Positions 28,545 through 59,528 of a DNA stretch of 64,000 bases are shown piece after piece; position 1 is the first letter of the stretch, and every line of letters starts with the position of its first letter. Location: NCBI GenBank assembly GCA_002189035.1, contig NEEC01000012.1, positions 1,612,001 to 1,676,000 of the forward strand. The letters run 5' to 3'. Source of the stretch: Utricularia gibba. Lineage: Eukaryota > Plantae > Magnoliophyta. Under the pieces are notes generated by a model, which made no database searches, was not told the origin of the DNA, and saw only the letters and a list, made by a program, of their open reading frames with translations. The translations under genes were made by a program, and so were the position numbers.

Positions 28545-31500
28545 ATGGCGACGGTTGATGTAATCAAATGTTGCCTAGAATCTATTCGACAGGTGAGTTG
28601 AGATTTTTCTTTTGTTTTGGTTTGCTTTCTGCTGACTACTTCCTTTCTGTATTCCCCTTTCTCTCTGGTAATGTTGTTGGTTTTTTTCTGCTTCCTCGGT
28701 TTTGCAGATATCGGATCACATTGATGACGCAGTAATTTATTTGGATGCGGGAAGTACGGAAGCTTTCCAAATAATTGGGGCTTACCCTTTGTTTCTGGAG
28801 CTTGGTGCTCGAGCTGTTGCTAGCTTGGAGAGCATGTCGGCTCTTGATAAAGTGAAACATTTATGGTGCCATTTGATTCATTGATTTTGTTTTTATTTTG
28901 AAATTTTTATGTGAGCTTTAGTGATGCTTTGGCTGAAAATTGTTCATCTCTTGCATTGTTTCCTGTGATTTCTTATGGCTGTTGCCCTCTAGGTGGTTGG
29001 CTGGGGAAGCAATCCTGGTCATGTGACGAAGATCGTTGTGTTCACATCACGTTTTCTGAGTGATGCACATAAATATATTTTACGCTGCCTGAATATGCTT
29101 CAAAGTGTTATAAATTGCGTTGTATACACATCGGTTTCAGAGGTGTGTAATTTTTCTTTTTAATCCATATTCTTCTTGTGTTTAGTATTTTTGTGCCGTT
29201 TTAATTCTATCTAAAAGTTAACTGTTTGGATCATTAGGTGGCACATTCCGCATATCCTGAATCTCCTCTAGGCCCAGATGCTTTCCATGAATATGAAACA
29301 TTGCTGAAGCAAGATTATGAAGAGATCTTAAAGAAACAAGAAACAGAGTGCAGTACGCTTGGACATAGCAATATTAGGCCAGATGAAAGTAATGCTACTG
29401 ATGAAGAAGGATGGTCTCATTTAACTTCCTTTGAGGAGGATATTTCTGTATATGATGGGCTTTCAAGCAAAAATGTACGCCAAGAAGATAATGTTGCCTC
29501 GGGTGGAATTGTTCGATCTGACTTGATGATCTCAGTACATCATTTCCCTTTGCTAATATGCCCATTTTCACCAAGAGTCTTTGTATTGCCTTCAGAAGGA
29601 TCCATTGCTGAAGCGAGCTTATCTACAGAGAATGAGAATTCAGTAAGCTCTGGTTTGCCCCGTTAAGCACTGGGAAACCTGCTGATGCTGAAGACATCCC
29701 CGCAGCAACTCTCATTGCTCAGTTCCTTTACCATTTGGCCTTAAAGGTGAACATTTTTTTCTTCTGCTATATTGCTTATTGAAGACTTGTTTCAAGTTAT
29801 GTATACATAATCGATGTTTGGGGGATCAACTTTTAGATTTTATTGAAGATGGATGGCAACATTGAATTGGCTGCAAGATATTATTACACAACTAAATTCA
29901 TATCGTTCGAAATTTAGAATTATATACTGAGTCTTCTTGAAATTATCCCACTTTGGCAATGGATGTTTGAGAGAATCCGCTGCGTCTGTCAAGTGGTGCT
30001 AATTTTTTTCTATAAATGATTGCAGATGGATCTGAAACTTGAAGTATTTTCATTGGGTGACATGTCAAAGCATATAGGAAAGCTTTTGACAGAGATGTCT
30101 AGCCTCTATGATGTTGCTAGGCGCAAACGATCAGCTGGGCTTTTAATTGTTGATCGTACACTTGATCTTGTGACACCCTGCTGTCATGGGGACTCTTTGC
30201 TGGATCGAATGCTTTCAACAATTCCTCGTAGGCAACGTAAAGCCACCGCCAATCAACTGAAAGGCTCTAAAAGCCTTCCTAAAACTGGTTCTGTTAAGCT
30301 GGAGCCTTCTCCTATTTCTGTCAAGATTCCTCTTGAAAGTGTTATCTCGCAAGATGACTCGAAAAATGATATTAGGTTGCTGAAGAACATAGAAGCATTC
30401 ATGCGTGGCTTGAATTCTATGGGCTCTGATTCTGGAAATGCTAAAATGAAAGTCACAGGTCATCTAAATGGTGAGGAGCTCTCCTTCTCTGATGAATTGA
30501 GTGGGACTTTGGTCTGTACTGATAACTTTCGTGGTGCTCCCTACTTGGAAGCTATAATGGAACGCAGAACAAAAGATGCAGTTATGCTAATAAAGAAATG
30601 GCTCCAAGAATGCTTACGTCATGAAAAAATCTCACTTGATGTGAGAGTGCGCCCTGGTTTCCCATCCAAGTCTGAGTTACTATCTCTGGTTAGGTATCTT
30701 GCCAAAAGGCAGTCCGCTATAATGAAATACAAAGGACTTATACAGTTAGCATCTGCGACGACATGCATTTTGGATGATGCATATTCAACTAAATGGGATG
30801 GTTTTATTAGTGCCGAGAAGATTCTGCATGTTAATGCTGCAGATTCAAGCCAGAGTCTTTCTTCTCAAATTAGCGATTTCATGAATAAGACTGCCATAGC
30901 AGCCTCGCTAGCGCAGAAGCAAGGTAAGTCTCAGGGAATTTTTACACTTGAGGATGTTCTGCTCTTGACAGTTGTTGGATACATGTTGGCTGGCGAAAGC
31001 TTCCCAAACTCAGGATCTGATGGTCCATTCTCGTGGCAAGAGGAGCATTTCATGAAAGAAGCATTAATGGATGCAGTTCTTGAGAATCCCACCATATCAA
31101 AGTTAAAGTTTCTTCATGGTATCTCTGAAGAGCTTCAATCCAAATTGGATAAATCACAATCGGATGAGAAGAAAGTCCTATCTAATCGCTTGGATTCGGA
31201 CTTTGATGATGATCAATGGGGTGATTGGGGTGATGAAGATGATGTAAAAGATGCCAAGAAAGATCAAGTATTTGGGGATATGCAGCTGAAACTTGAGCTA
31301 AGAGACAGAGTTGATAATCTTTTCAAGTTTTTTCATAAGCTGTCTAGGATCAAAAGGAATGCTGCACCCAAAGACCCGTTCGAGTCTACATGGAACAACG
31401 ATTCATATTCCAGCAAGGGATTGCTTAGCAAACTCTTGACAAATATTCTAGACAAACATGCTCTTCCCGGACTAGAGTATCATTCCTCTACAGTCGGACG

Positions 31501-31902
31501 CCTTTTCAAGAGTGGATTTGGAAGACTAGGTCTAGGCCAGGTATTTCATTGTGAAAAACATTATGTTTATTATGACTTGGGACATGGGTAATCTTTCCTC
31601 ATCTCTGTATACTATAGGCGAAACCAAATCTTGCTGATCTGAACGTTATACTGATCTTTGTTATCGGAGGCATCAACGGAACTGAGGTACATCCATTCTC
31701 CTCCTCATCTAGTCCATTCGTATATTCGATCATTCTATAAATCTAAATGTAAACATCGTGTTGAAATTCGCAGGTCCAGGAAGCCATGGAGGCGGTAGCA
31801 GCAAGCAGCAGGCCTGATATTGATCTGATCCTCGGTGGCACAACATTTCTAACGCCAAGCGACATGCGTGAACTCCTCTTGGGTGATTTTTGTCATATTT
31901 GA
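28545..31902 (+). CDS. MIP3: Sec1-family domain protein MIP3 (MAG2-interacting protein 3 / SCFD2-like), about 854 aa; one apparent frameshift at 29658-29661
   Basis: Exons 28545-28592, 28708-28851, 28993-29142, 29238-29746 (509 nt, one short), 30026-31540, 31618-31686, 31774-31902. AVIYLDAGSTEAFQIIGAYPLFLELGARAV, SPLGPDAFHEYE, LLIVDRTLDLVTPCCHGDS and VIGGINGTEV match MIP3. Confidence 0.92.
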
Positions 31903-41503: not shown

Positions 41504-43225
41504 ATGAAAACGTGCGTTTTCGCGTTGATCGCTCTGTGTCTTCTATCCCCGTCGGATGCCAGAATCGCGAGAACTGAGTGCGATTTCTCTCAGGGAAACT
41601 GGGTTCGTGATGATTCCTATCCTCTATACTTATCATCGCAGTGCCCCTTCATCTTAACGGAGTTTGATTGCCGGAAAAACGGCCGCCCGGACGATGATTA
41701 CACCAAGTTCCGATGGCAGCCCCACGGCTGCGAGTTGCCGAGGTAACCTCCTGTTCGATTGTTTTTTTTTTCTTCAACTTTTAGTGTTCTTATCTTCCTC
41801 TCTTTTTGTCTTTTCCCACTAATCTCCTTTATGTTATCTTTTTGTTTTTTAAAGATAAGATGAGAATATTCAGATTTCTTATTCTTATTATATACTTTTT
41901 TCATATTAGAATTAATCAGCACTCTAATAATTCTATAAATTCTAATTATCAAAATAAAAATGATTGTAAATCTAATTCTAGGAATATGATAAGAAAAATT
42001 CATTCTTATTCTATAATCATTTGAAAAATTAATTTAAATGATTAATAATTTTTTAAGAGTATTGAATGATTCAAAATATTGAGGTTAGAGGTGGACGTGG
42101 GAGATGATGGGACTTGGACACAGGAGAGGTTGAAAGGCCACTTTGTTCATGTATTGTTTGTCACTCAAAGGAGACGACGACATCTTAACCACTGCCACGA
42201 ACTCCTTGTGATGTGATCTGCTCCTGCTGACATCCTGAGCTGCAGGTTCGACGCTCATGGCTTCATGGAGAAACTAAGAGGGAAGAGGCTCATCTTCGTT
42301 GGAGATTCTCTGAGTTCAAATCAATGGCAGTCGCTCGCTTGCCTGCTTCACGTAGCCTTTCCCCATGCAATCTACGCCCTTCAGACCATCAACGGCCTGT
42401 CCACCTTCACCTTCCCTGTAAGTGGTGTGTTTTGATGTTCATTCATTCATTCATTCCGACCATTTATACGTGTTGGGCTGCAGGAGTACGGAGTCTCGCT
42501 TCTGTTCCTGAGGAACGCGTTTCTGGTGGACATAGTGGAGGAGCCGGCGGGTCGTGTTTTGAAGCTGGAGTCGATCAGTTCGAGCCGGGTTTGGGGGGGA
42601 ATGGACGTCATGATCTTCGACTCGTGGCACTGGTGGCTGCACTCCGGCAGAAAGCAACCGTGAGCATTCATTCAACTTGGTGGCAGAGTAAAACAAAACA
42701 CAAAACATCTCTCTCAACTTTTTTGGTGGCAGATGGGAATGGGTGGTGGAGGGGAAGAGGATCGTGAGAGACATGGATCGCTTAGTTGCGTATGAAAGAG
42801 CACTCAAGACCTGGGCGAATTGGATAGACTCCAACGTGGACACGACTAAGACTCAAGTCTTCTTCCAGGGCGTCTCCCCTGACCACGACGGGTATCCAAT
42901 TCCCACTTCCAAAATGAGAATCATGCGCAGAATCATATGCGTAACTGGTTGCAGGGGGCTGTGGGAGACGTGCGCCGGCAAGTGGAGGCCGACGGGACCG
43001 GGAACCGGAAGCCGGCACCCGGGGGAGGTTTTGCTGGAGAGAGTGCTGGCGGCGATGGAGAAACCAGTCCATCTGCTCAACATCACGGCGATGTCGCAGA
43101 TGAGAATCGACGGCCACCCTTCGTTCTACGGCTCGAGGAGCCATCGGGGGATGGACTGCACACACTGGTGCCTCAGTGGGGTGCCTGATACCTGGAATCA
43201 GTATTTGTATGCTCTGCTCAATTAG
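41504..43225 (+). CDS. TBL: Trichome birefringence-like (TBL/DUF231) polysaccharide O-acetyltransferase, TBL41-43-type
   Basis: Exons 41504-41742, 42246-42417, 42484-42659, 42733-42891, 42955-43225. CDFSQGNWVRDDSYPLY, FDCRKNGRPD, FVGDSL, FDSWHWW, and DCTHWCLSGVPDTWN (GDS and DxxH catalytic motifs). Confidence 0.93.
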
Positions 43226-47600: not shown

Positions 47601-50600
47601 ACTTTACTCCTCTTCTCTTTTGACACATGCACATAGCAGATGGAGACAAAAATTCTGAAATGGTGGATATTAGGTTTTCTATTCCAAAATAACTCATATG
47701 GAGTTTTGAGCTCTCCTGTTTCAGTTGTAGATGGCCTATTCAGTATGTAAACTGCAGCATTCACTGCTTTAGCCCAATATGTAAAGGATATTCCCTTTTC
47801 AAATAGCATATACCTTGCCATCTCTGTTATAGTTCTATTTCATTTCTCACTAACACCATTCTGTTGTGTAGTATAAGGAGTAGTAAATTGATGAATAATG
47901 CCTTGTAGATCACATATGTTTGCCAGCTCCCTAGGTGTGCATTCTCCTCTATTATCTATTCAAATTTTCTTAATTTTTTTCCCACATTGATTTTCTATTT
48001 GAGCTTTAAATATTTTGAACATGTATAGCACTTCAGATCTACATTTCAAGAAAAACACTCAGCAAACTTAGTAAAATCATCAACAAATATGAGGTAATAC
48101 CTATTTCCTCTTGTAGTAATTGTACTCATAGATCCACATACACTACTATAGACAAGTTCTTACTTTCCAAGTGCCTTTTGGAACAAGTAACCGAGTAATT
48201 TTTCCTAGTTGATAGCTTGAGTACACATCATGACTTGATGTCAATTCAGATAAGTTGTTCACTAATTGATTTTTTTGAACTTTGTTAAGAGAATTAAAGT
48301 TGTGGTGTCTGCAATGTTTATGCCACAGGTTTTCCATGTCCTTGGCAGATAGACAAATATCCAAGTTGAGATTGGAGAACTCCATGGGTTTTAATGGAAA
48401 TATCCAATTTTTCATTGAAACTAACAACAGTAATTTTCCAGTGGCATTGGAAATCCTACACTCATCATGAAAGAATGCTATGGTGATCCCTTTACTCATC
48501 AATTGACCAACACTTATCAAATTATGTGATGCTTTTGATAAATAGGTGTACTTTATGTCTAAATATTTGTTTGTTAGCTCAAGCCTTGCTGTTCCTATCC
48601 CATCCACTCTAATCACGTTCCCATCTGTGATTTATATATTTTTTTGCAAACAAGGGTCCATATGAGATGATGGTGAAATCATTTGTAAGATGATTACTAT
48701 TACTACTATCAACCGGTCAAGTTTGATTCCCATTAAATCTAGTAGTTGTAGCTAGAACTTTATCTTTCCGTAGTAAGTAAAGGTCAAACACTTCCTTTCC
48801 ATTAATAATGTTTGAAGGAGTTACAACAATTATAATTTTAGCAGAATCGAAGACAAAGATGCCCCTTTTGTACTTGGTTGTCCCATTTTGCTCATCTTCT
48901 TTTCTTCCATTGCATACTTGCTAAATGTAACCCTTTTCTTGACAATAATTGAAAATCTTGTGAGGGCGATAAAAGCAGTTCGTGGGTAGCTGGTTTTTCT
49001 ATTTGTAGTAAGGAGACAATTGAAAGTGTCCCTTCTTTTCTTTATTATGGCTTTGCATAGCTGATCCAGTCGGCATAGTGTTAAAGGCTCCGTAACTTCT
49101 TGTAATTGATATCTTTTCTCTCTTATTTCTTCATCCCACCAGTTGAGGCAATGGCTACAATAATAGAGTTGAAGGATCTAGGTAGAATTCCAACAATTTT
49201 TTCTTTCACTCTCCTATCATCCATAGCTTCTCCAAGTGCCTTAAATTTTTTGATAGCAGGTAGTAGAGTGTCCTTGAAAGTGGTTCTAGAGGTTCTAGAA
49301 TCTAATTTCAAGTCATCTATAACCCTCCAAAGGTTGGTGACCTTCATTTCCTTCCTTTCATATGTGATTGAAAACTCTTATGCAAGTGAATCCCAAACTT
49401 TCTTTGAGGAGGAGCACTAGATAATGTAGTTGTAAACCTCCCCTACAAATGCTGCATCGAGAACACTTCTCGCTAAAAGGGACCAGTCGTTCCATTTCTC
49501 TGAGGCCTTGACATCCGCATCAGTAAACTTAAGTGTGTCTAAAAAGACATCCCAAAGTTTCAACGTCTTGATGTGATTTGTCATTTTTACAACCCAAATC
49601 ATGTAGTTTTTTCCATTGAAAACAGGAGATAATGAGTTGGTTGACGCCATGATATTGATCTACTATTTGCAGAAATCTGGTGAGTAAAAACAAGTAGAAG
49701 TGACCTGAACAAGCTTGCCCTCTTGGGATTTTTAGTATCCCATAGTTGTCACCATGAAAAAGGTTCTATAGCTTCCAAACTTGAAGTCTTAAAGATTCGT
49801 TACTATCTAGAACCACAAGTTTGAGATTTGAGTGCTTGCAAATTGAGTAGCTAAATGTATATTGCTAAAAAGGCAGGTTTATATAGATTGTACATATTTT
49901 ATAAACCAATTCCACGATTAGAAAAATAACTGGTTGTTTGTTTATTTGTGTTTTCTAATGAGCTTCAATGAGGGTTGAAGCCTTTTACTTATGATTGATA
50001 TGTTGGGTTGGGCGTTGTAGTATGAGACTTGTCCTTTGGACCTACTTTCTTTTCTATGTTGCTTTTTGCTTTCCTAGAATCCCTACTTCTCATTTGTAAT
50101 CCCTTCGTCTTGGATCTATTTATTTGAAGATGCAGCTTCAATTCCTCATCACTCAACACGCAATTGATGACTGTGTTCTCAAATCCACTACTAGTTATCT
50201 GTTTACCCTAGATCTGTGACCTTTGTGTGGAATTGCAAAAAGCAAGATTTGATCGCTCAATCTTTAGCCGAGATGGAATATGTTGTTGGAGCCTCAACAA
50301 CCAATCATGCCTAATGATTGATAAACTTATGAGAGTTCCTATGAATTAAAATATAGCAACCTCACATATTGAAGATCAATAACAAATCACAATTAATATT
50401 GCACAGAATCCAATCATGTTCATAAAGACAAAGCACATCAGGATCAAATCTCATATTCTGAGAGATTATATGAAAGAAGAAAACCTAAAGTTATAATTTC
50501 TATCATCGAGCATCAAGCGGTAGATATCTTAACAAAGTCATTATTCACGAAGCATTTCTCTAAAATCAGGGAATTACTAGGTTTGCAAAGAAACCCAATT

Positions 50601-51130: not shown

Positions 51131-51965
51131 ATCCTCTGTGTTCTTACGCTACGAGGATGGTCAACAATGAGAGCGCTTGCAGCGTTTACAACTTTTCTGT
51201 AACTTTCCAAACCTCAATGTTGCAAGATAGGGTATGCCATTGTTCTTTGAGCACTAAAATGTCATCACTCTCTTGTGTTGTACGTAACATGGTTAATGAT
51301 TTTCTTACAGAAAGTCCGACATTTTCTGAAGCCTCGTCTCCTTTTGATCGAAGAAACGGAGACAAGAACCATAATGACTTGTGACAAGAGAAGCCCCCCT
51401 CCAACAGACTTCAGCTTACTCCGACATGCATATTCAATTCTCCCCTTGTTAATCTGCAACCGTTATTGCAAAGATCTGAAACCGTTTACGGGTATTTCCA
51501 AATTCCGAGCATAACCACCAGTAACTTTCTCCGGCCGCCAACTTTTCCGGAGAAAGTGGTTTCAATTTTTGTATCCTATTTTCAACATATGTCGTCGTCC
51601 CTCGATTTCTCACCCTCTCAGGATCCATGCACAGAGTCGGTTTGTCTTACCGCAGATTCAAACACCATGATCACGTAAACACGATTTGTCATACAATATT
51701 TATCATTGTGGTGGAGGTTGGCCTGTGAGAAGGCCATCACAGGCTTGTCGTAAAGAGTGATCAGAAGTAAGAAATTAGAGCATGACATTTCTTAGTATCC
51801 ATCACCATTGTTTTGCGGAACAATCGCATGGGAATGAAACACACGCACGCACATGAACTGATCGATCGTCTCACGTTACACGAATTGAAGGGATATTCAA
51901 AGTTGCAACTAAAAAGGCACTAAGCTGAACATCAAAATAAAAAATCTCATTCATGGTCATCCTCC

Positions 51966-52880
51966 TCAGAGTCGCCCCTCGTTCGCCATCTTGAAGATCT
52001 CAGCCTGGGCTTCGGCGGCTTCGCTGGATCCCAGAGATGAGATGAACCTTTCTCTCACCTCGCTGGTAGTGTAAGGGAACTTGGAGTGCACCATAGAGTT
52101 AAGCAGGGCGGCAGTCCCTTCCCGGTAAAGCTCTCCGAACCCGTCCGTTCGAGGGTTCGAGAGCGCCTGCATCACGTTGGGTCGGGGCCCGAAGCCTGGA
52201 ATGCTGGGGATGCCAAATACGTTGCCCAGAGTCCCTAGCCAGCCCACTATGTTCCACACCATTGATGGATGGTTCCTCCAGAAGCTGGATTTCACAATTA
52301 CAAATATGTGAGAAGGAATTCAATTTAATTCAGTTGTGTGATTCTTTTGGAAGATGAGTGAAAGCGATCTAAGATCCCAGGATACTGAGAAAATCAATTT
52401 AGGCAGTATTTGATCATCATTTCTATTACTAATATAATTCAAATCAAGTGATTCTAGGTTGGGTGATGGTGGTACTTACATGCAAGGGAAAGGTCCTGGG
52501 GAGTTTGGATCGGATACCGGAGGTGAGGGGGATATGGTAGGAGTTGTAACCGGTGGAGTATACGTCACCGGCGTTGTGATCGGCGGAGTTGAATAGGGTG
52601 GCCGGTTGTTCGAACCACCGTGTCCCTCTGATGGAGTTGGCGTCCTACCGCAGCTTACTGGTGGCGATGAGCTTCCATAGCTACCTCCCGAGCTGCGGCT
52701 TGGAGGGCTCCCGGAAGTGCCTCCTGAGCTGCGGCTGGCAGGACTCCCTTTTGGAGGATGATGGGAGTGAGGGTCTTGTGAGTAGTAGCCCTTGCTGTCT
52801 TCAAAAGTGGAGGAGGATGCAGGGGAAAAAATAAGGGAAAGAAGCAGAAGCAGCAGGAGCTTCGTTGCCTTGATCTCCAT
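51966..52880 (-). CDS. PDF1: Protodermal factor 1 (Pro/Ser/Gly-rich cell wall protein, about 239 aa)
   Basis: Exons 52880-52480 and 52284-51966. Signal peptide, Pro/Ser-rich repeats, and the conserved PDF1 C-domain FWRNHPS...VGWLGTLG...ALSNPRTDGFGELYREGTAALLNSMV...FKMANEGRL. Confidence 0.93.
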
Positions 52881-53024
52881 GGATCTTCTTCTTGAGTTTC
52901 CTGTTGAAAAAAATAAAACAGAGATTGGTGGTGAAGAAAGAGTGAGAAGGGGAGAATCAAAGGGTGGAATATAAAGAGTAAAGAGGAGACAGTGAAGTAA
53001 ATACAAGCTGGTGCTCGCTACAGG

Positions 53025-53032
53025 TGCATTTA
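53025..53032 (-). promoter_or_regulatory. L1 box (TAAATGCA) in the PDF1 proximal promoter
   Basis: Exact TAAATG(C/T)A match about 145 bp upstream of the ATG and about 50 bp upstream of a TATA-like TTTATAT (about 52969-52975). A second exact copy lies at 54199-54206. Confidence 0.75.
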
Positions 53033-53164
53033 ACATCATTAACTACCAATGCCTGTTCCTAGTTTTGGGTTTTTAAAAAAACTTGATTATGAATTATAAT
53101 CATCTCTCTTTTTTCCTTAAATGGCAGGCAAGTTTTGTTGTGTTGATTGGAGTAGATGCCCCTC

Positions 53165-53430
53165 ATCTATTGGGTAACTAGGGTTTGTCTGGAGGGGAGA
53201 GAGGATCTAACCATAGGGAGGAGATAACCTTCACCTATTGGATAACTGAACCTAGGGTTTATGAGTTTGTTTGATAAAAAGGCGATTTAGTCATAGAGAG
53301 GAAATCAACCTACCCCTATTTGGATAACCACTCAAGTTACGATTAGGGATTATGAGTTTGTTTGAAGAGACCAATAACTCGTATCACATAGAGCAGAAAC
53401 CCTACTTCAGTGGATAGACCTCAGGTTTAT
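53165..53430. repeat. Degenerate ~90-bp tandem repeat (3-4 units)
   Basis: Recurring CTATT(T)GGATAAC...TAGGG(T/A)TTATGAGTTTGTTTGA...CATAGAG units. Confidence 0.5.
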
Positions 53431-53699
53431 GGGTTAATCATCTGCTAATCCAACTACTAAGCAAGTTTTTCTCGTTAAGGTTTCATGAATTCAAAGGTTC
53501 AAACTTGTAAAGTCTCCTACTGTGCCACACTTCCTAAATCTATGCCTTGCACCTTCCAAGTTCAAAAATGTTCAGAAGTTCGGTATGCTGCATGGAGCGG
53601 GGAGTTTCATAGGAAGAGGGTGGATTTGAAACTTGAAAAGGGGAATTCAAAAGTTGGGATTTGGGATTCCATTCAGGATCTGAATTGAGTGAGCCTCCT

Positions 53700-56330
53700 A
53701 AGAGCGATGATTATGAGACAGTGTGGTCCTACAACTTTGATGGAGGAGTTTATTGCAATTGGTGATAATGGAGTTTGGCATCTCATAGTTGAGGTGTAAC
53801 TGTATCGAAAATAATGGACAACGCCAAGTTTTTTCTTTGTTCATGGAGTGTCTTCTCGCCAGCCAGTCCCTAAACCCATCCACTGAGCTGCTCCATACCT
53901 CTGCTCCCCCAGCTGATGATCCGCCCCAACAGACTCTGACGCCCGCATTGGAACCACGCCGCGCATCCTAACCATCGAATGCACGCACGCTTCCGGAAGC
54001 CTTTGGAGTGAAAAAAAGGAAAGAACACAGCTACGAAAGCAATGGGTGCAAGTGTTAGAATTGAAAGGGGAAAACGAAGTGGGTAATGGAGTGCGACCGA
54101 GGAGCGAGTAGTGAATACCCTAAAAAAAACTAGGGCATTGAATGACAAATCTTGGGTGTCACAGTCGGATCACGGCCCCCACCCCCACCTCTTTTTAATG
54201 CATTTATTGAAACGTTAGCACAGTAAGCTTTTTTACCTTTTCCGCATGATTGACTTGCCAATGGTCATGGCCATGGCTCCCCTCCCACAGAAGCCCAAAA
54301 ACCGCCATAACCAGACCATGTCCCACGATGCGAATGAACATCTTCTGAAACCAGGTTCAGAGAGACCCACACCCATCTCCCAGTCCCTCCCCAGAAGGGC
54401 TCCTTCCTCAGTAACTCCGTCTGATGAGAGAGTGCCCTGTTTCGTGGGACTGGGAGTTGGAGTGGTGTGTTGGTTTTTCAATGGGGAATCAAATGGCGGG
54501 TGACCGCTGGAAACAAACGTGACGTTGGTGGAGATGCTTCAGCTGAGCTGTGGAGGTAGACAAGTGAAACATCAGCACAACACAGCAGCAGCAATAAGTG
54601 ATGTGTGCGTGGAGCGAATCTCTCCATTCCCAGCTTCGCCCCCACCCTACATGCACTTAATTTCTACACAAATAATATAATACCACTTTAATGAAATTTA
54701 GTTATTTCAAGAGAATAATTTCATTCATAAATTTCCATTTCCAGCCATTAAACCTCCCACTACCCTCTTAGTCCATCTTCCAAATTCCGAAAATTCGAAT
54801 TTGATCCGAAAAATTCAAATTTGATCCAAAAAATTTGAATTTGATCCAAAATTTGACATTTCGATCAAATTCAAAGGTTAGTGACTGAAATTAGAAAATT
54901 CTTCCAAATTTCATAGGCAAAAGAAAAAAAATAAATTTCTGATTTTGGCATTTTTTTATTATATTTAGAGTGACGAACGTTTTCTTTTCGTATTTTAGGT
55001 CATATGGAATTGAATAAATGAAAAATGTTTCAAGTAAATTAATGTTTATCATCGGAATTACTATAGATACCATTACTAGAAATCAATGTATTTTGATGGT
55101 TTAAATTATATGTGAATAATTATTTCAATGAATATCTTAAAAATTATATATGATAAATATTTCTCAAATTTTGTAATGATAGTTAGGTATATCTAGTTAT
55201 TTTATATTTTAAAAAAATTGAGTGATTTAATATTAGAATTATAAAAAGGTGAGAAAAAAAAAGCTGAGATGGGCCTGGGCTAGTGCGACATTCGTGGATG
55301 GGAGGCCCAATGGCGAAGTGTCAGCCCAGTTTGGTATTTAATGAATTTTATATTATTTTTTGCGTAGAAAAAATTAGATATCAGGAAAGGATCCAAACAA
55401 GGGATTCTGATGTACGGAAGGAGACCAAGCGATGCAAGAATTGCAGAACTGGGGATGAAGGTGACGCAGCAGCACCTACCTTCTCACAAAAGCCATCATT
55501 TTTCTCCATTCAGTTTTAGAATTTGCTTGTGGATATAAACTGTTGGAACGAGATGGGGCAAAGTCAAAACTTTTGGACAAAACAGAGAGAGACAGAGGCC
55601 ATTGGGTCACCAACAGCCATCGACGCATATAAACTATGAGGTCCGGACCAACTGCTTCATTCCCTACACCAATCAACCATCTATCTGTCAAGCTACATTC
55701 TTCACCAGACCTCCCATTCGTATGGAATGGTGGCCGTAATCGCCCACCGGAGCCTGATTTTCCAGCCTTCTTGCCCTGCAGATACAACCTGGAAGCTCAG
55801 ATTTTGAGTTTGGAGTTAGGGGAGTGAAAAACAGGGCAGGGCAGGGCACTCTTCCAGGACAGCACAGTGGAGAGTCTCAAATGCCTCGTTTTTAAGCATT
55901 TTTTCAGCAGATCAGATCAGAAGGTGATTTCATCCAAGAAAAATGAGCATTTGCACAAATATGTAACTCTCAGCATAAAAAAAGAGCCTTTTTTTTTTGT
56001 CCCATCGCTCAAAAGGCAGATAAACACAATGCCCAGAAGATAACAGATAATGGGTTTTACAAAAAATGTCACCTTTCAAGGAGAATCCCAGCTCTCAGAA
56101 AATGGAACAGAGTAAAGCGCCATCTCAGCAAAAAAGCCCTAAAAATTTTACATCCCAGCCTCCCGATTTTCGGCAGAGGGAATGTGAGAAATCTGCAGAA
56201 TAAGGAGGAGGAAGAAGAGAATAAGAATAAGACAAATCTGTATATCAATACATACTCTTCTTCCTTTTCCAATTATGTGCAGTGGCACCCACCCACCATT
56301 CAACACTCAACTCATCAATGGGGCAGAGAA
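53700..56330 (-). ncRNA. Candidate spliced long non-coding RNA carrying a miR165/166 target-mimic site
   Basis: TATATAA near 56351-56357. Donors AAG|GTGACA (56072), AAG|GTAGGT (55479), AAG|GTAAAA (54236); acceptors CTTCCAG/CTGCAG (55790/55777) and TTGTTTCCAG (54508). Raised GC with no recognisable protein. Transcription is inferred, not shown. Confidence 0.5.
55643..55665 (-). promoter_or_regulatory. Bulged miR165/166 complementary site
   Basis: Minus strand AGGGAATGAAGCAGTTGGTCCGG versus the miR166 complement GGGGAATGAAGCCTGGTCCGA. Watson-Crick pairing at miRNA nt 2-8 and 10-20, with a central bulge. Confidence 0.8.
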
Positions 56331-57440
56331 CAAGGCGTATGCGTGACCATTATATAATCGATAGTTTCACCCCCTTGCGGGTTACACGAATCACGAGATG
56401 GGTAAACCAGAAACTGTGTTTAACAGCGGTGAAAAAGCTTTAAATTTTTGGGGTTGAAAGTAGGCGCCCCCCACACACACACAGTTCTTAACAACTCAGC
56501 GTCTTCACCGTCGTTCTTTACCTGTCATGGACAAGCAACATTCTTACGTTCTTGGTTTTGGCCCTGCGCCCCTCCACCGTTCCTTCGCTTTCTGCGTCCA
56601 GTTTTGGGACCGAACTGCAGCAATATTCTTCTTCACTTAAAAATTTCATCTTTTTTTCTGTCTTTAGCCATAAATATGTATTTAAAGCATGGAATGTTCA
56701 ACACCAAGTACTGCAACTGCATTTTCAAAACGGAGTAACTCCAATGTCTTCTTAAACACCACTACTCAATAATTACTAAAAACAAATCCTTTTTTATTTT
56801 TATTATTGAAAAAGTAATATTATGCCTCTAAATATTCCGAATTTTTTATCGGATCCGATAAAATAAAAGAACTATTTAAAAAATAAATATTTGTAAAATT
56901 AAATCTATCAATCAGTTGGTTAAGGGACTGATATCTATTATTAATTTTTTGAAATGATTTTATTTAATTTATAAAGATTTTAATCTTTATTAATTCTTTA
57001 ATAAAATAAAAAATTTAGATTATGTAATTAATTTCATAAATTAGTAAATTTATTAAATCTTTATTTTAGATATTAAATAAAAAATTAATTAGAAAAATTA
57101 TATTATTCAATTTTTTAAAATATGCATTTTATATTATAATATTAAATTATATAATAATTTAATGTATTAAACTTTATAATATTATTTATTTTATTAAATT
57201 TTATAATATAATTTTATATTATTTCATAAAACAATTTTACAATCATAAACTAATTTTATTCATTTGTTACGTGGGTTTGAGTTTAACCCAAGTTTAATTT
57301 ATTTGAATTTAAATAAATATATTTCTCAGTTTAGAATATAATTTTTATTTAGTTGTTAGGTATATTTTATTTGAATTATAGGTGAACATGCATTTTGTAT
57401 GAGAGATAAAAATTGGATTTGAAAATTTTATGTAAAAAAT

Positions 57441-58683: not shown

Positions 58684-59528
58684 TCAGGTCTTCTTTGCAG
58701 CGCGTAAGTAGCATGCGATACTCGCTACTCCAAGTGCGGTGATCGTGGAACCACCGAGGATGATCCAGCGGTTCTTTTCCAAGCGCCTAATGATTCCCTG
58801 TTCATCAAGACTAGACCCCTTAACATGAGTTCTTTGCTCCAACTCAAACATGCTGATCAACTTCTCTTTCTCCTGCAAATTACTGTCAAGAACATTGATT
58901 TTCTCTTCCAAGGCAGCCATTGTTTCCCCCAAGCTTGCATTCGTTTTTTCTAATCTCTTGGTACTCTCTGTAGCCCCTGCAACTCCTCAATACTCTTCTT
59001 CAGAGTTTGAATTTCTGTTTCCTTCTGTTGCTTCTCGATTTTCAAACCATTCTCCACACCTTCGAGTTCTACGATTTTAGACGACAGAATGTCTCTCTCC
59101 TTGGTGACGGCCGCGAGCTTGGCATCCTTCTTCTTCTCACTCTCTATTACTCTTTCCAATTCCCTAGCCAAAGCATCTATTTCAGCCATGGATTCTTGTA
59201 AGTTGCTCATAGCGAATCCCAAATCAAGCTGCAGACGGGAAACATCAGCTTCAAGACCCGCAGCACGATCTGCCACTGCTTGCAACACCTTCTTATCCGA
59301 TTCCAACTCCTGAAGCCCATCCTGCAAGTCTTGATTATCCCTTCTTAATTTCTCCGCTTCCACCTTCAGCTTCTCAAGTTGCTTCTTGTAACCATCATTT
59401 TCTTCCAGAATCCTTCCTTTATCACTCTCAAGCTCATATAACCGTTGAGTGAGCCCTGAATCTTTTGAGGACTCATCGGTTATTTCCACAGATCGATCCC
59501 CGTTGGGCAAACCTTCATTATCGGCCAT
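58684..59528 (-). CDS. PMD2: Peroxisomal and mitochondrial division factor (PMD1/PMD2-type) coiled-coil tail-anchored protein; apparent frameshift at 58974-58977
   Basis: Long coiled coil with KKVLQAVADRAAGLEADVSRLQLDL, resembling PMD1 KKALEAISTRAVELETEVSNLHDDL. C-terminal transmembrane segment WIILGGSTITALGVASIACYL in the next frame. PMD1 and PMD2 cannot be distinguished by eye. Confidence 0.8.

Follow-up and report, generated by a model that had tools for sequence, protein, structure and literature searches.

Does the DNA upstream of PDF1 in the bladderwort Utricularia gibba encode a natural decoy of the microRNA (miRNA) miR166? The question is raised by a 64-kb stretch of contig NEEC01000012.1 (hereafter the window; coordinates without a locus or contig name are positions within it), in which an earlier reading of the bare sequence, here called the original prediction, had proposed a long non-coding RNA (lncRNA) carrying a centrally bulged miR165/166 site. 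Together with the HD-ZIP III genes, miR165/166 determine the adaxial-abaxial polarity of leaves. In U. gibba, the domain of UgPHV1 decides whether a flat/needle-like leaf or a trap is formed (Whitewoods et al. 2020, summarised in PMC7661387); a native miR166 decoy in this species, if real, would offer a small lever on that decision that is easy to edit. Mimics were not looked for in the published catalogue of U. gibba non-coding RNAs (PMC8333044). What is new here is that the site lies in a transcribed, spliced RNA. That this lncRNA is a working endogenous target mimic (eTM) of miR166, i.e., an eTM166-type decoy, is the reading that we favour, at about an even chance.

The element on which the question turns is the following:

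55643..55665, minus strand: miR166 binding site with a central 2-nt bulge, at position ~362 of a ~622-nt spliced RNA.

Read directly from the window, the minus-strand letters of 55665-55643 are AGGGAATGAAGCAGTTGGTCCGG. This string occurs once in the 64-kb window, even when up to 3 mismatches are allowed, and matches were obtained in 0 of 100 shuffles. When the site was paired with miR166 by RNAduplex, nt 1-9 of the miRNA were paired (with G:U at nt 1 and 9), Watson-Crick pairs were formed at nt 2-8 and 10-20, and nt 21 remained unpaired. Between nt 9 and 10, the target has two extra bases, AG, that form the bulge; nt 10 and 11 are both paired. The program thus returned the very pairing scheme of the original prediction (Watson-Crick at nt 2-8 and 10-20, G:U at nt 1 and 9, a 2-nt bulge at 9/10), and this geometry bears out the centrally bulged decoy design claimed there. 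The duplex energy was -33.6 kcal/mol, compared to -44.1 for a perfect site, and miR165 was a weaker partner (-29.1). Further, a custom scanner for miR165/166 mimic-like sites, which allowed bulges of 0-6 nt at five central positions, detected no second such site in the window; the site also holds the sole miR166 seed match of the lncRNA.

The likelihood of finding such a site by chance was estimated from the base composition of the window, with a mismatch scored as 1, a G:U pair as 0.5 and penalties of up to 2 accepted. A site of this quality has a probability of 1.5e-10 per position and geometry. For any bulge of 1-5 nt at four central places, at most 0.6 sites are expected on both strands of a 102-Mb genome, and 0.03 for the exact geometry of the site. 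Within the 1.45 Mb of lncRNA sense strand reported for U. gibba, the expectation falls to ~0.004, rising to ~0.09 if 20 miRNA families had been screened. A chance origin is therefore unlikely for this site, yet possible in a genome-wide scan.

As to whether the site is part of an RNA, sampled words of 55400-56400 are present in RNA runs of one organism from three studies, and those of 55480-55775 occur in 9 RNA runs from the 3 studies, at shares of 0.55-1.00. A transcript model was built from the assembled contigs of four of these runs (X1, X2, X5 and X6, covering the three studies), placed on 51500-57400. It consists of these parts:

56350..56356, minus strand: TATA box (TATATAA) of the lncRNA, read from the sequence, with the X1 contig starting 27-33 nt further downstream.

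56073..56323, minus strand: exon 1 of the lncRNA, 251 nt, from contigs, its start near 56323 being deduced from a cDNA 5′ end.

55776..56072, minus strand: intron 1 of the lncRNA, 297 nt, GT..AG, the joint being present in 4 of 4 RNA runs from three studies.

55405..55775, minus strand: exon 2 of the lncRNA, at least 371 nt, from contigs, with 55405 as the furthest contig reach.

The joint from 56073 to 55775 is common to the contigs of all four runs and places the miR166 site in exon 2; the six letters reported between the two sides of the joint are the end of exon 1, CTTGAA(AG). Since the GT..AG dinucleotides are readable on the minus strand, this strand, which bears the site, is the one transcribed. 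The contigs of all four runs continue unbroken across the site, so that the minus-strand RNA over 55643-55665 on which the proposal depended does exist, in spliced form. The X1 contig stops at 56323 and is followed by 26 non-genomic letters, while a truncated X5 contig, from the same study, abuts a largely matching non-genomic string of 22 letters at 56139. The large agreement between these strings identifies them as a 5′ adaptor of the library, marking a cDNA 5′ end. Contigs of X2, X6 and X5 cover portions of exon 1, and exon 2 is reached as far as 55405 (X1), 55425 (X5), 55529 (X2) and 55575 (X6).

The spliced lncRNA is at least 622 nt (~0.6 kb) long, and its longest open reading frame (ORF) starting with ATG has 50 codons' worth of protein (50 aa) and lies behind many upstream ATGs. 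No Pfam match was obtained for its ORFs, no Rfam match was found in the lncRNA region, and exon 2 showed no unusual fold (z = +0.73 vs. shuffles). A coding gene or pseudogene was rejected on account of the ORF length and the lack of a Pfam match, and a repeat or transposon on account of the presence of a single copy within the window. The RNA contigs, the 5′ end and the ORF scan are in agreement with the minus-strand, TATA-driven, spliced and ORF-poor unit that had been predicted, including its acceptor at 55775 and its TATA box. The exon end and donor proposed at 55480 did not hold, as this position is read through by the X1 and X5 contigs to 55405 and 55425, respectively. The best explanation, jointly with the decoy reading, is that the RNA is the non-coding, two-exon product of ~0.6 kb of an RNA polymerase II gene.

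As a side observation on exon 2, four DNA runs of 2019 under the same organism label contain only 0.34 of the sampled words of 55480-55775, while DNA runs of 2013 contain all of them; a divergent accession or a cryptic relative may be behind the 2019 runs.

The arrangement of the site recurs in other plants. Public metagenome contigs were scanned for GGGAATGAAGC, followed by 2-5 free bases and TGGTCCG. This yielded 105 matches, the AT-rich ones of which were recognised as plant DNA by exact protein matches on the same contigs. The recurrent plant design consists of GGGAAUGAAGC, a variable bulge, a U opposite nt 9 and then UGGUCCG, and was found in two paralogous loci of Arabidopsis thaliana, in Phaseolus and Vigna, in a further legume-like group and in panicoid grasses. 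The sites compared were the following:

L065:2532-2554, plus strand: A. thaliana chr1, near SAUR67/At1g29510, GGGGAAUGAAGC-CA-U-UGGUCCGU.

L058:1189-1211, plus strand: A. thaliana chr2, beside At2g34330, AGGGAAUGAAGC-AA-U-UGGUCCGU.

Phaseolus vulgaris and Vigna sites: GGGGAAUGAAGC-AGAU-U-UGGUCCGA.

L117:3956-3980, plus strand: P. vulgaris chr6, mimic-type site with a 4-nt bulge, its presence being confirmed in the assembly of this chromosome.

Further legume-like group: bulge AUUG.

Panicoid grasses (L019 group): UGGGAAUGAAGC-GUC or GUA-U-UGGUCCGG.

Variation, both in the legume alignment and between the sites within each group, is confined to the bulge, with invariant arms. In nine of ten plant groups (metagenome loci L007-L111), nt 9 of miR166 faces a U where the complementary base would be C, and a G:U wobble adjoining the bulge thus seems, as judged from these alignments, to be a recurrent feature of natural miR166 mimic-like sites. 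With AG-U, the site in the window fits this design, and its 2-nt bulge is of the same size as those of both A. thaliana sites. L058 shares with it the placement of the bulge at 9/10 and the G:U at nt 9; for L065, a bulge between nt 8 and 9 gives the better drawing. In addition, 9 nt immediately 5′ of the window site (GATTGGTGT, 55666-55674, minus strand) match 10 nt immediately 5′ of the L058 site (GATTGGGTGT, L058:1179-1188) with one gap, at an anchored P of 2.5e-5 per comparison for a match that was noticed post hoc. Natural miR166 mimic-type sites of Arabidopsis, legumes and grasses can thus be described as one design, in which a variable bulge is followed by a U opposite nt 9. A literature search for the string of the window site, and for the Arabidopsis and legume variant strings, gave no match.

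Some features of these other loci stand on their own. The 3′ flanks of L065 and L058 are strongly conserved between the two loci, which also have paralogous small ORFs on the opposite strand and look like retained duplicates. At L117, the site follows the stop codon of PHAVU_006G061800 at a distance of 254 nt; this gene, on the same strand, encodes a conserved, uncharacterised protein of 233 aa. Likewise, the other legume sites (L036, L041, L079, L084, L035 and L066) are found 230-260 nt past the stop of the 233-aa ORF, or ~1.1 kb past it in the third group. From this position, the legume site probably belongs to the 3′ untranslated region of the gene for the 233-aa protein, and not to a lncRNA.

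Natural miR166 mimics have been described since 2013, and the window RNA is most likely a further example of this known class. Aside from the link to traps and the shared design, it would be an ordinary addition. Like it, ath-eTM166-1 and osa-eTM166-2 are intergenic non-coding RNAs with one centrally bulged miR166 site (PMC8005961, PMC6162444, PMC8989527). Their overexpression raises HD-ZIP III mRNAs and alters leaf shape and development (PMC8005961), whereas a corresponding function of the window RNA is predicted from its sequence. Moreover, base editing of the Arabidopsis eTM166 site lowered PHV, CNA and PHB (PMC8989527). The published rule set for eTM166 calls for a 3-nt bulge, in contrast to the 2 nt plus G:U at nt 9 found here, a comparison made by description. 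In tomato, slylnc0195 was tested as a miR166 decoy by virus-induced gene silencing and agroinfiltration and raises class III HD-Zip mRNAs (PMC4683531); in citrus, csi-eTM166 is listed as a predicted miR166 decoy (PMC8215657). Both resemble the window RNA in being species-specific lncRNAs predicted as miR166 decoys, and differ from it, again by description, in having been found via stress or ripening transcriptomes.

Beyond miR166, the IPS1/At4 RNAs that act on miR399 are also non-coding, with a single site and a central bulge, which in their case blocks slicing and sequesters the miRNA (PMC6162444). They differ in their miRNA and pathway, in a 3-nt bulge opposite the cleavage site, and in a site conserved across angiosperms, while no orthologue of the window locus was found. 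The engineered decoys MIM166 and STTM165/166 and other bulged decoys follow the same pairing logic as the window site (PMC3121747), but place the bulge between nt 10 and 11 and use strong promoters, in contrast to the bulge at 9/10 and the native expression seen here. In planta, decoys with bulges of 1-4 nt at nt 10/11 were the most effective, remained uncleaved and inactivated their miRNA (PMC3121747).

By analogy with these systems, we infer that AGO-loaded miR166 would bind the lncRNA through two stretches of perfect pairing, nt 2-8 and 10-20. Beside the scissile bond (nt 10/11), the helix would be distorted by the 2-nt bulge together with the weak G:U at nt 9, so that slicing would be prevented, and the unsliced lncRNA would hold or destabilise miR166. 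Where the lncRNA is expressed, the withheld miRNA might then result in a slight relief of HD-ZIP III mRNA repression. We favour this decoy reading because the site and its pairing were confirmed, the RNA is transcribed, spliced and non-coding, the chance expectation is low and the design recurs in plants. The efficacy of decoys with 1-4 nt bulges, the known natural miR166 mimics, the 5′ flank in common with L058 and the high abundance of miR166 in U. gibba (PMC8333044) also speak in its favour.

The site was also compared with the published rules for decoys. Against the eTM prediction rules of Wu et al. 2013, taken as quoted in PMC4274897, pairing at nt 2-8 is perfect (7 of 7 Watson-Crick) and there are three mismatches or G:U pairs outside the bulge, the maximum allowed (a mismatch at nt 21 and G:U at nt 1 and 9). 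The locus is intergenic and non-coding (ORF of 50 aa, no Pfam match), and the site lies further than the prescribed 200 nt from genes, as the PDF1 RNA contig begins 2.7 kb away and the PMD-like gene on the other side has its stop codon at a distance of ~3 kb. The site-bearing strand, as a functional eTM demands, is transcribed (GT..AG intron in 4 runs, exon 2 in 9 runs).

Several points weigh against the decoy reading. Firstly, the bulge departs from the published rules: instead of exactly 3 nt opposite nt 9-12 (Wu et al. 2013), it has 2 nt, AG, at 9/10, and a loop of 3 nt results only when the G9:U wobble is taken to be unpaired. The rule of Ivashuta et al. 2011, with a 1-5 nt bulge or mismatches opposite nt 10-11 (PMC3121747), agrees with its size, and its placement is one position off. 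The concern over a 2-nt bulge plus wobble voiced in the original prediction was thus justified insofar as the strict 3-nt rule fails, but this is no defect in itself, given that decoys with 1-4 nt work and that there are look-alikes in Arabidopsis. Indeed, L065 and L058 would themselves escape the strict rule with their 2-nt bulges, and its use would overlook natural miR166 mimic-type sites with 2-nt and 4-nt bulges. Secondly, resistance to slicing is assumed from the precedent of bulged decoys. Thirdly, miR166 ranks with the most abundant miRNA families of U. gibba (PMC8333044), and with one site and a modest assembled depth the titrating power of the lncRNA is doubtful. Fourthly, no alignment to any other eTM166-like locus extended beyond the site and ~9 adjacent nt, and L065 and L058 are look-alikes by sequence and geometry. 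The chr1 locus was not equated with the published ath-eTM166, as the description of the base editing (four consecutive C-G pairs, protospacer 2-5) misfits an NGG protospacer-adjacent motif there.

The remaining point concerns conservation. The site was sought at the PDF1 loci of Artemisia, Paulownia, Rehmannia and Sesamum alatum, with 8-10 kb flanks, and on two Genlisea contigs with PDF1, as well as at the PMD loci of Sesamum angolense, Rehmannia and Orobanche, with 10-kb flanks, and in 3.3 kb downstream of PMD in Genlisea. In Paulownia, Rehmannia, Sesamum and Artemisia, no mimic-like site was detected within the 10 kb that precede PDF1, relaxed thresholds included, and nothing similar to the lncRNA exons was found at these four PDF1 loci. 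The two Genlisea PDF1 contigs also lack the site. The syntenic one, KE529510, stops 1.8 kb upstream of PDF1, and the proximal promoter alone aligns with the window there; in the paralogous one, the upstream intergenic region is complete and contains no site. A single weak match (penalty 4.5) is located near the start of the PDF1 gene on Genlisea contig L005, outside upstream or intergenic DNA. No site was present in the PMD flanks of Sesamum, Rehmannia, Orobanche or Genlisea either. The conservation in syntenic PDF1/PMD intervals that had been proposed as a check was therefore not found in Genlisea, whose contigs are short, or in six other asterid genomes, five of them Lamiales; as a test of synteny, this is weak in the case of Genlisea and negative in that of the remaining genomes. 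On the other side stand the design and the 9 adjacent nt, which agree with an A. thaliana site. Since PDF1 and PMD are not adjacent in the other Lamiales loci fetched, the interval between them is a product of genome rearrangement in this lineage.

These results fit an alternative that we consider a serious possibility, at clearly less than an even chance, namely that the lncRNA is young and lineage-specific and owes its miR166 match to chance or to a stray piece of MIR166- or HD-ZIP III-related sequence, such that binding might occur in vitro with no meaningful effect in the plant. It would account for the lack of conservation in every syntenic interval tested, including Genlisea as the closest available relative, and for a single site and modest assembled depth facing a very abundant miRNA (PMC8333044). 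The chance expectations of up to 0.6 sites per genome, and of ~0.09 in lncRNA with 20 families screened, also leave room for it. To our knowledge, many computationally predicted eTMs have never been validated. It is contradicted by the exact geometry occurring in an expressed lncRNA exon on the right strand, for which only ~2e-4 to 4e-3 is expected, by a design equal to that of sites conserved within other plant groups, and by the 5′ flank that matches an Arabidopsis site. GATTGGG also precedes the miR165/166 site of HD-ZIP III mRNAs on its 5′ side, which would hint at an origin from a target gene; the peptide in the reading frame of exon 2 has an apparent resemblance to the HD-ZIP III region (PHB) around the miR166 site.

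A second alternative takes the transcription itself to matter in cis, with the miR166 site being incidental; the RNA would either modulate the PDF1 promoter from upstream or provide alternative 5′ exons of a transcript directed at PDF1. The following features bear on it:

51788..52930, minus strand: PDF1 gene, from spliced contigs in X2, X6 and X5, with a poly-T loose end.

53868..54259, minus strand: weak spliced unit between the lncRNA and PDF1, from a single 182-nt X1 contig of depth 5.4.

54199..54206, minus strand: octamer TAAATGCA, resembling an L1 box; it falls within the intron of the weak unit, and the lncRNA starts 2.1 kb upstream of it.

53025..53032, minus strand: L1-box-like octamer TAAATGCA, in the proximal PDF1 promoter.

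As had been claimed, the lncRNA lies upstream of PDF1 on the same strand, minus, and the PDF1 RNA contig has its 5′ end ~3.4 kb further downstream. Between the two, the weak unit comprises an exon ending at 54243 (17 loose letters of its contig match 54259-54243), an intron at 54242-54031 (GT..AG on the minus strand) and a next exon from 54030 to at least 53868, so that a joint from 54243 to 54030 was seen in one run. The word depths of the lncRNA contigs are of the same order as those of PDF1 within the same runs, which would also suit an action in cis. However, among the four RNA runs no contig joins the weak unit, seen in X1 only, to the lncRNA or to PDF1, and none connects the lncRNA exons to PDF1. 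The PDF1 contigs begin at ~52930, with a conserved proximal promoter and an L1 box directly upstream, and the match of 20 out of 21 nt to miR166 would be left unexplained. We regard a cis-acting role as improbable.

An extension of the decoy reading would give the locus a deeper history. Here, the lncRNA would be the bladderwort branch of an old eTM166 lineage that predates the rosid-asterid split, with the motif GATTGG(G)TGT-AGGGAATGAAGC-NN-TTGGTCCG in common with the Arabidopsis locus, and now situated beside PDF1, where it would tune the miR166/UgPHV1 boundary on which the choice between planar leaflets and cup-shaped traps depends. If true, it would offer a natural RNA handle on trap morphogenesis. 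There is no synteny between the window and the Arabidopsis loci, and an unanchored alignment of the 70-nt flanks to these loci was not significant; we consider this scenario a long shot.

It is very unlikely that the site is a genuine sliced target, which would make the lncRNA regulated by miR166 rather than a regulator. The extensive pairing, the perfect seed and the paired nt 10 and 11 are what would be expected of a target, but the 2-nt bulge right beside nt 10 breaks the helix required for slicing, bulged decoys with 1-4 nt were uncleaved and inactivated their miRNA (PMC3121747), and the contigs of all four runs cross the site intact. Finally, that the plus strand represents a decayed MIR166 gene, the match being the former mature miRNA with a 2-nt insertion, is scarcely credible: the plus strand does resemble miR166 with two additional bases, but there is no Rfam MIR166 match at E ≤ 1, no miR166 copy within 3 mismatches in the window and no hairpin-like stability (z = +0.73), grounds on which a MIR166 precursor was likewise rejected, and the RNA actually made is the minus strand.

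Turning to the surroundings of the decoy candidate, an epidermal link through L1 boxes had also been claimed. No L1 box was found between the lncRNA start and the PMD gene, and the nearest two TAAATGCA octamers are both downstream, towards PDF1. With 13 copies of TAAATGYA in the window and 10.1 expected, the count is at chance level. The claim was thus not upheld, and control of the lncRNA by L1 boxes was rejected in view of the downstream position of both.

The PDF1 coding sequence (52880-52480 and 52284-51966) encodes 239 aa and is interrupted by an intron at 52479-52285; the X2 contig starts at 52930, and poly(A) is added near 51788. Homologues of the protein bear the PF27764 PDF1_C domain, and the closest named PDF1 domain is that of Genlisea aurea. 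A homologue search with the N-terminal exon gave no match because this region is proline-rich and of low complexity. The neighbour on the other side of the lncRNA is the following:

58684..59528, minus strand: gene for a PMD-like coiled-coil, tail-anchored protein, in two ORF blocks, the upstream neighbour of the lncRNA.

Its best matches are the ‘Peroxisomal and mitochondrial division factor 2’ of Sesamum and proteins of Orobanche, Rehmannia and Genlisea.

Some minor observations were made elsewhere in the window. A short tandem array of ~20-nt units (ttggatcaaattcaaatttt-like) is located at 54790-54880 (minus strand), in the AT-rich spacer that separates the lncRNA from the weak unit. Microsynteny was seen between 41543-43223 and 51966-52880 of the window and Genlisea aurea KE529510.1 (L006), with PDF1 followed by a PMR5N/PC-esterase (TBL) gene. 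The PDF1-TBL interval of Genlisea holds a citrate synthase gene, in place of which the window has retrotransposon remains (gag-pre-integrase ORF, 48146-48616). Lastly, an open frame of 523 aa at 30020-31591 (plus strand), which had no match in Pfam, the only scan run on it, may represent one large exon of a gene encoding a protein; as judged by the look of its sequence, this could be an exon of a Sec1-family (SCFD2/MIP3-like) gene.

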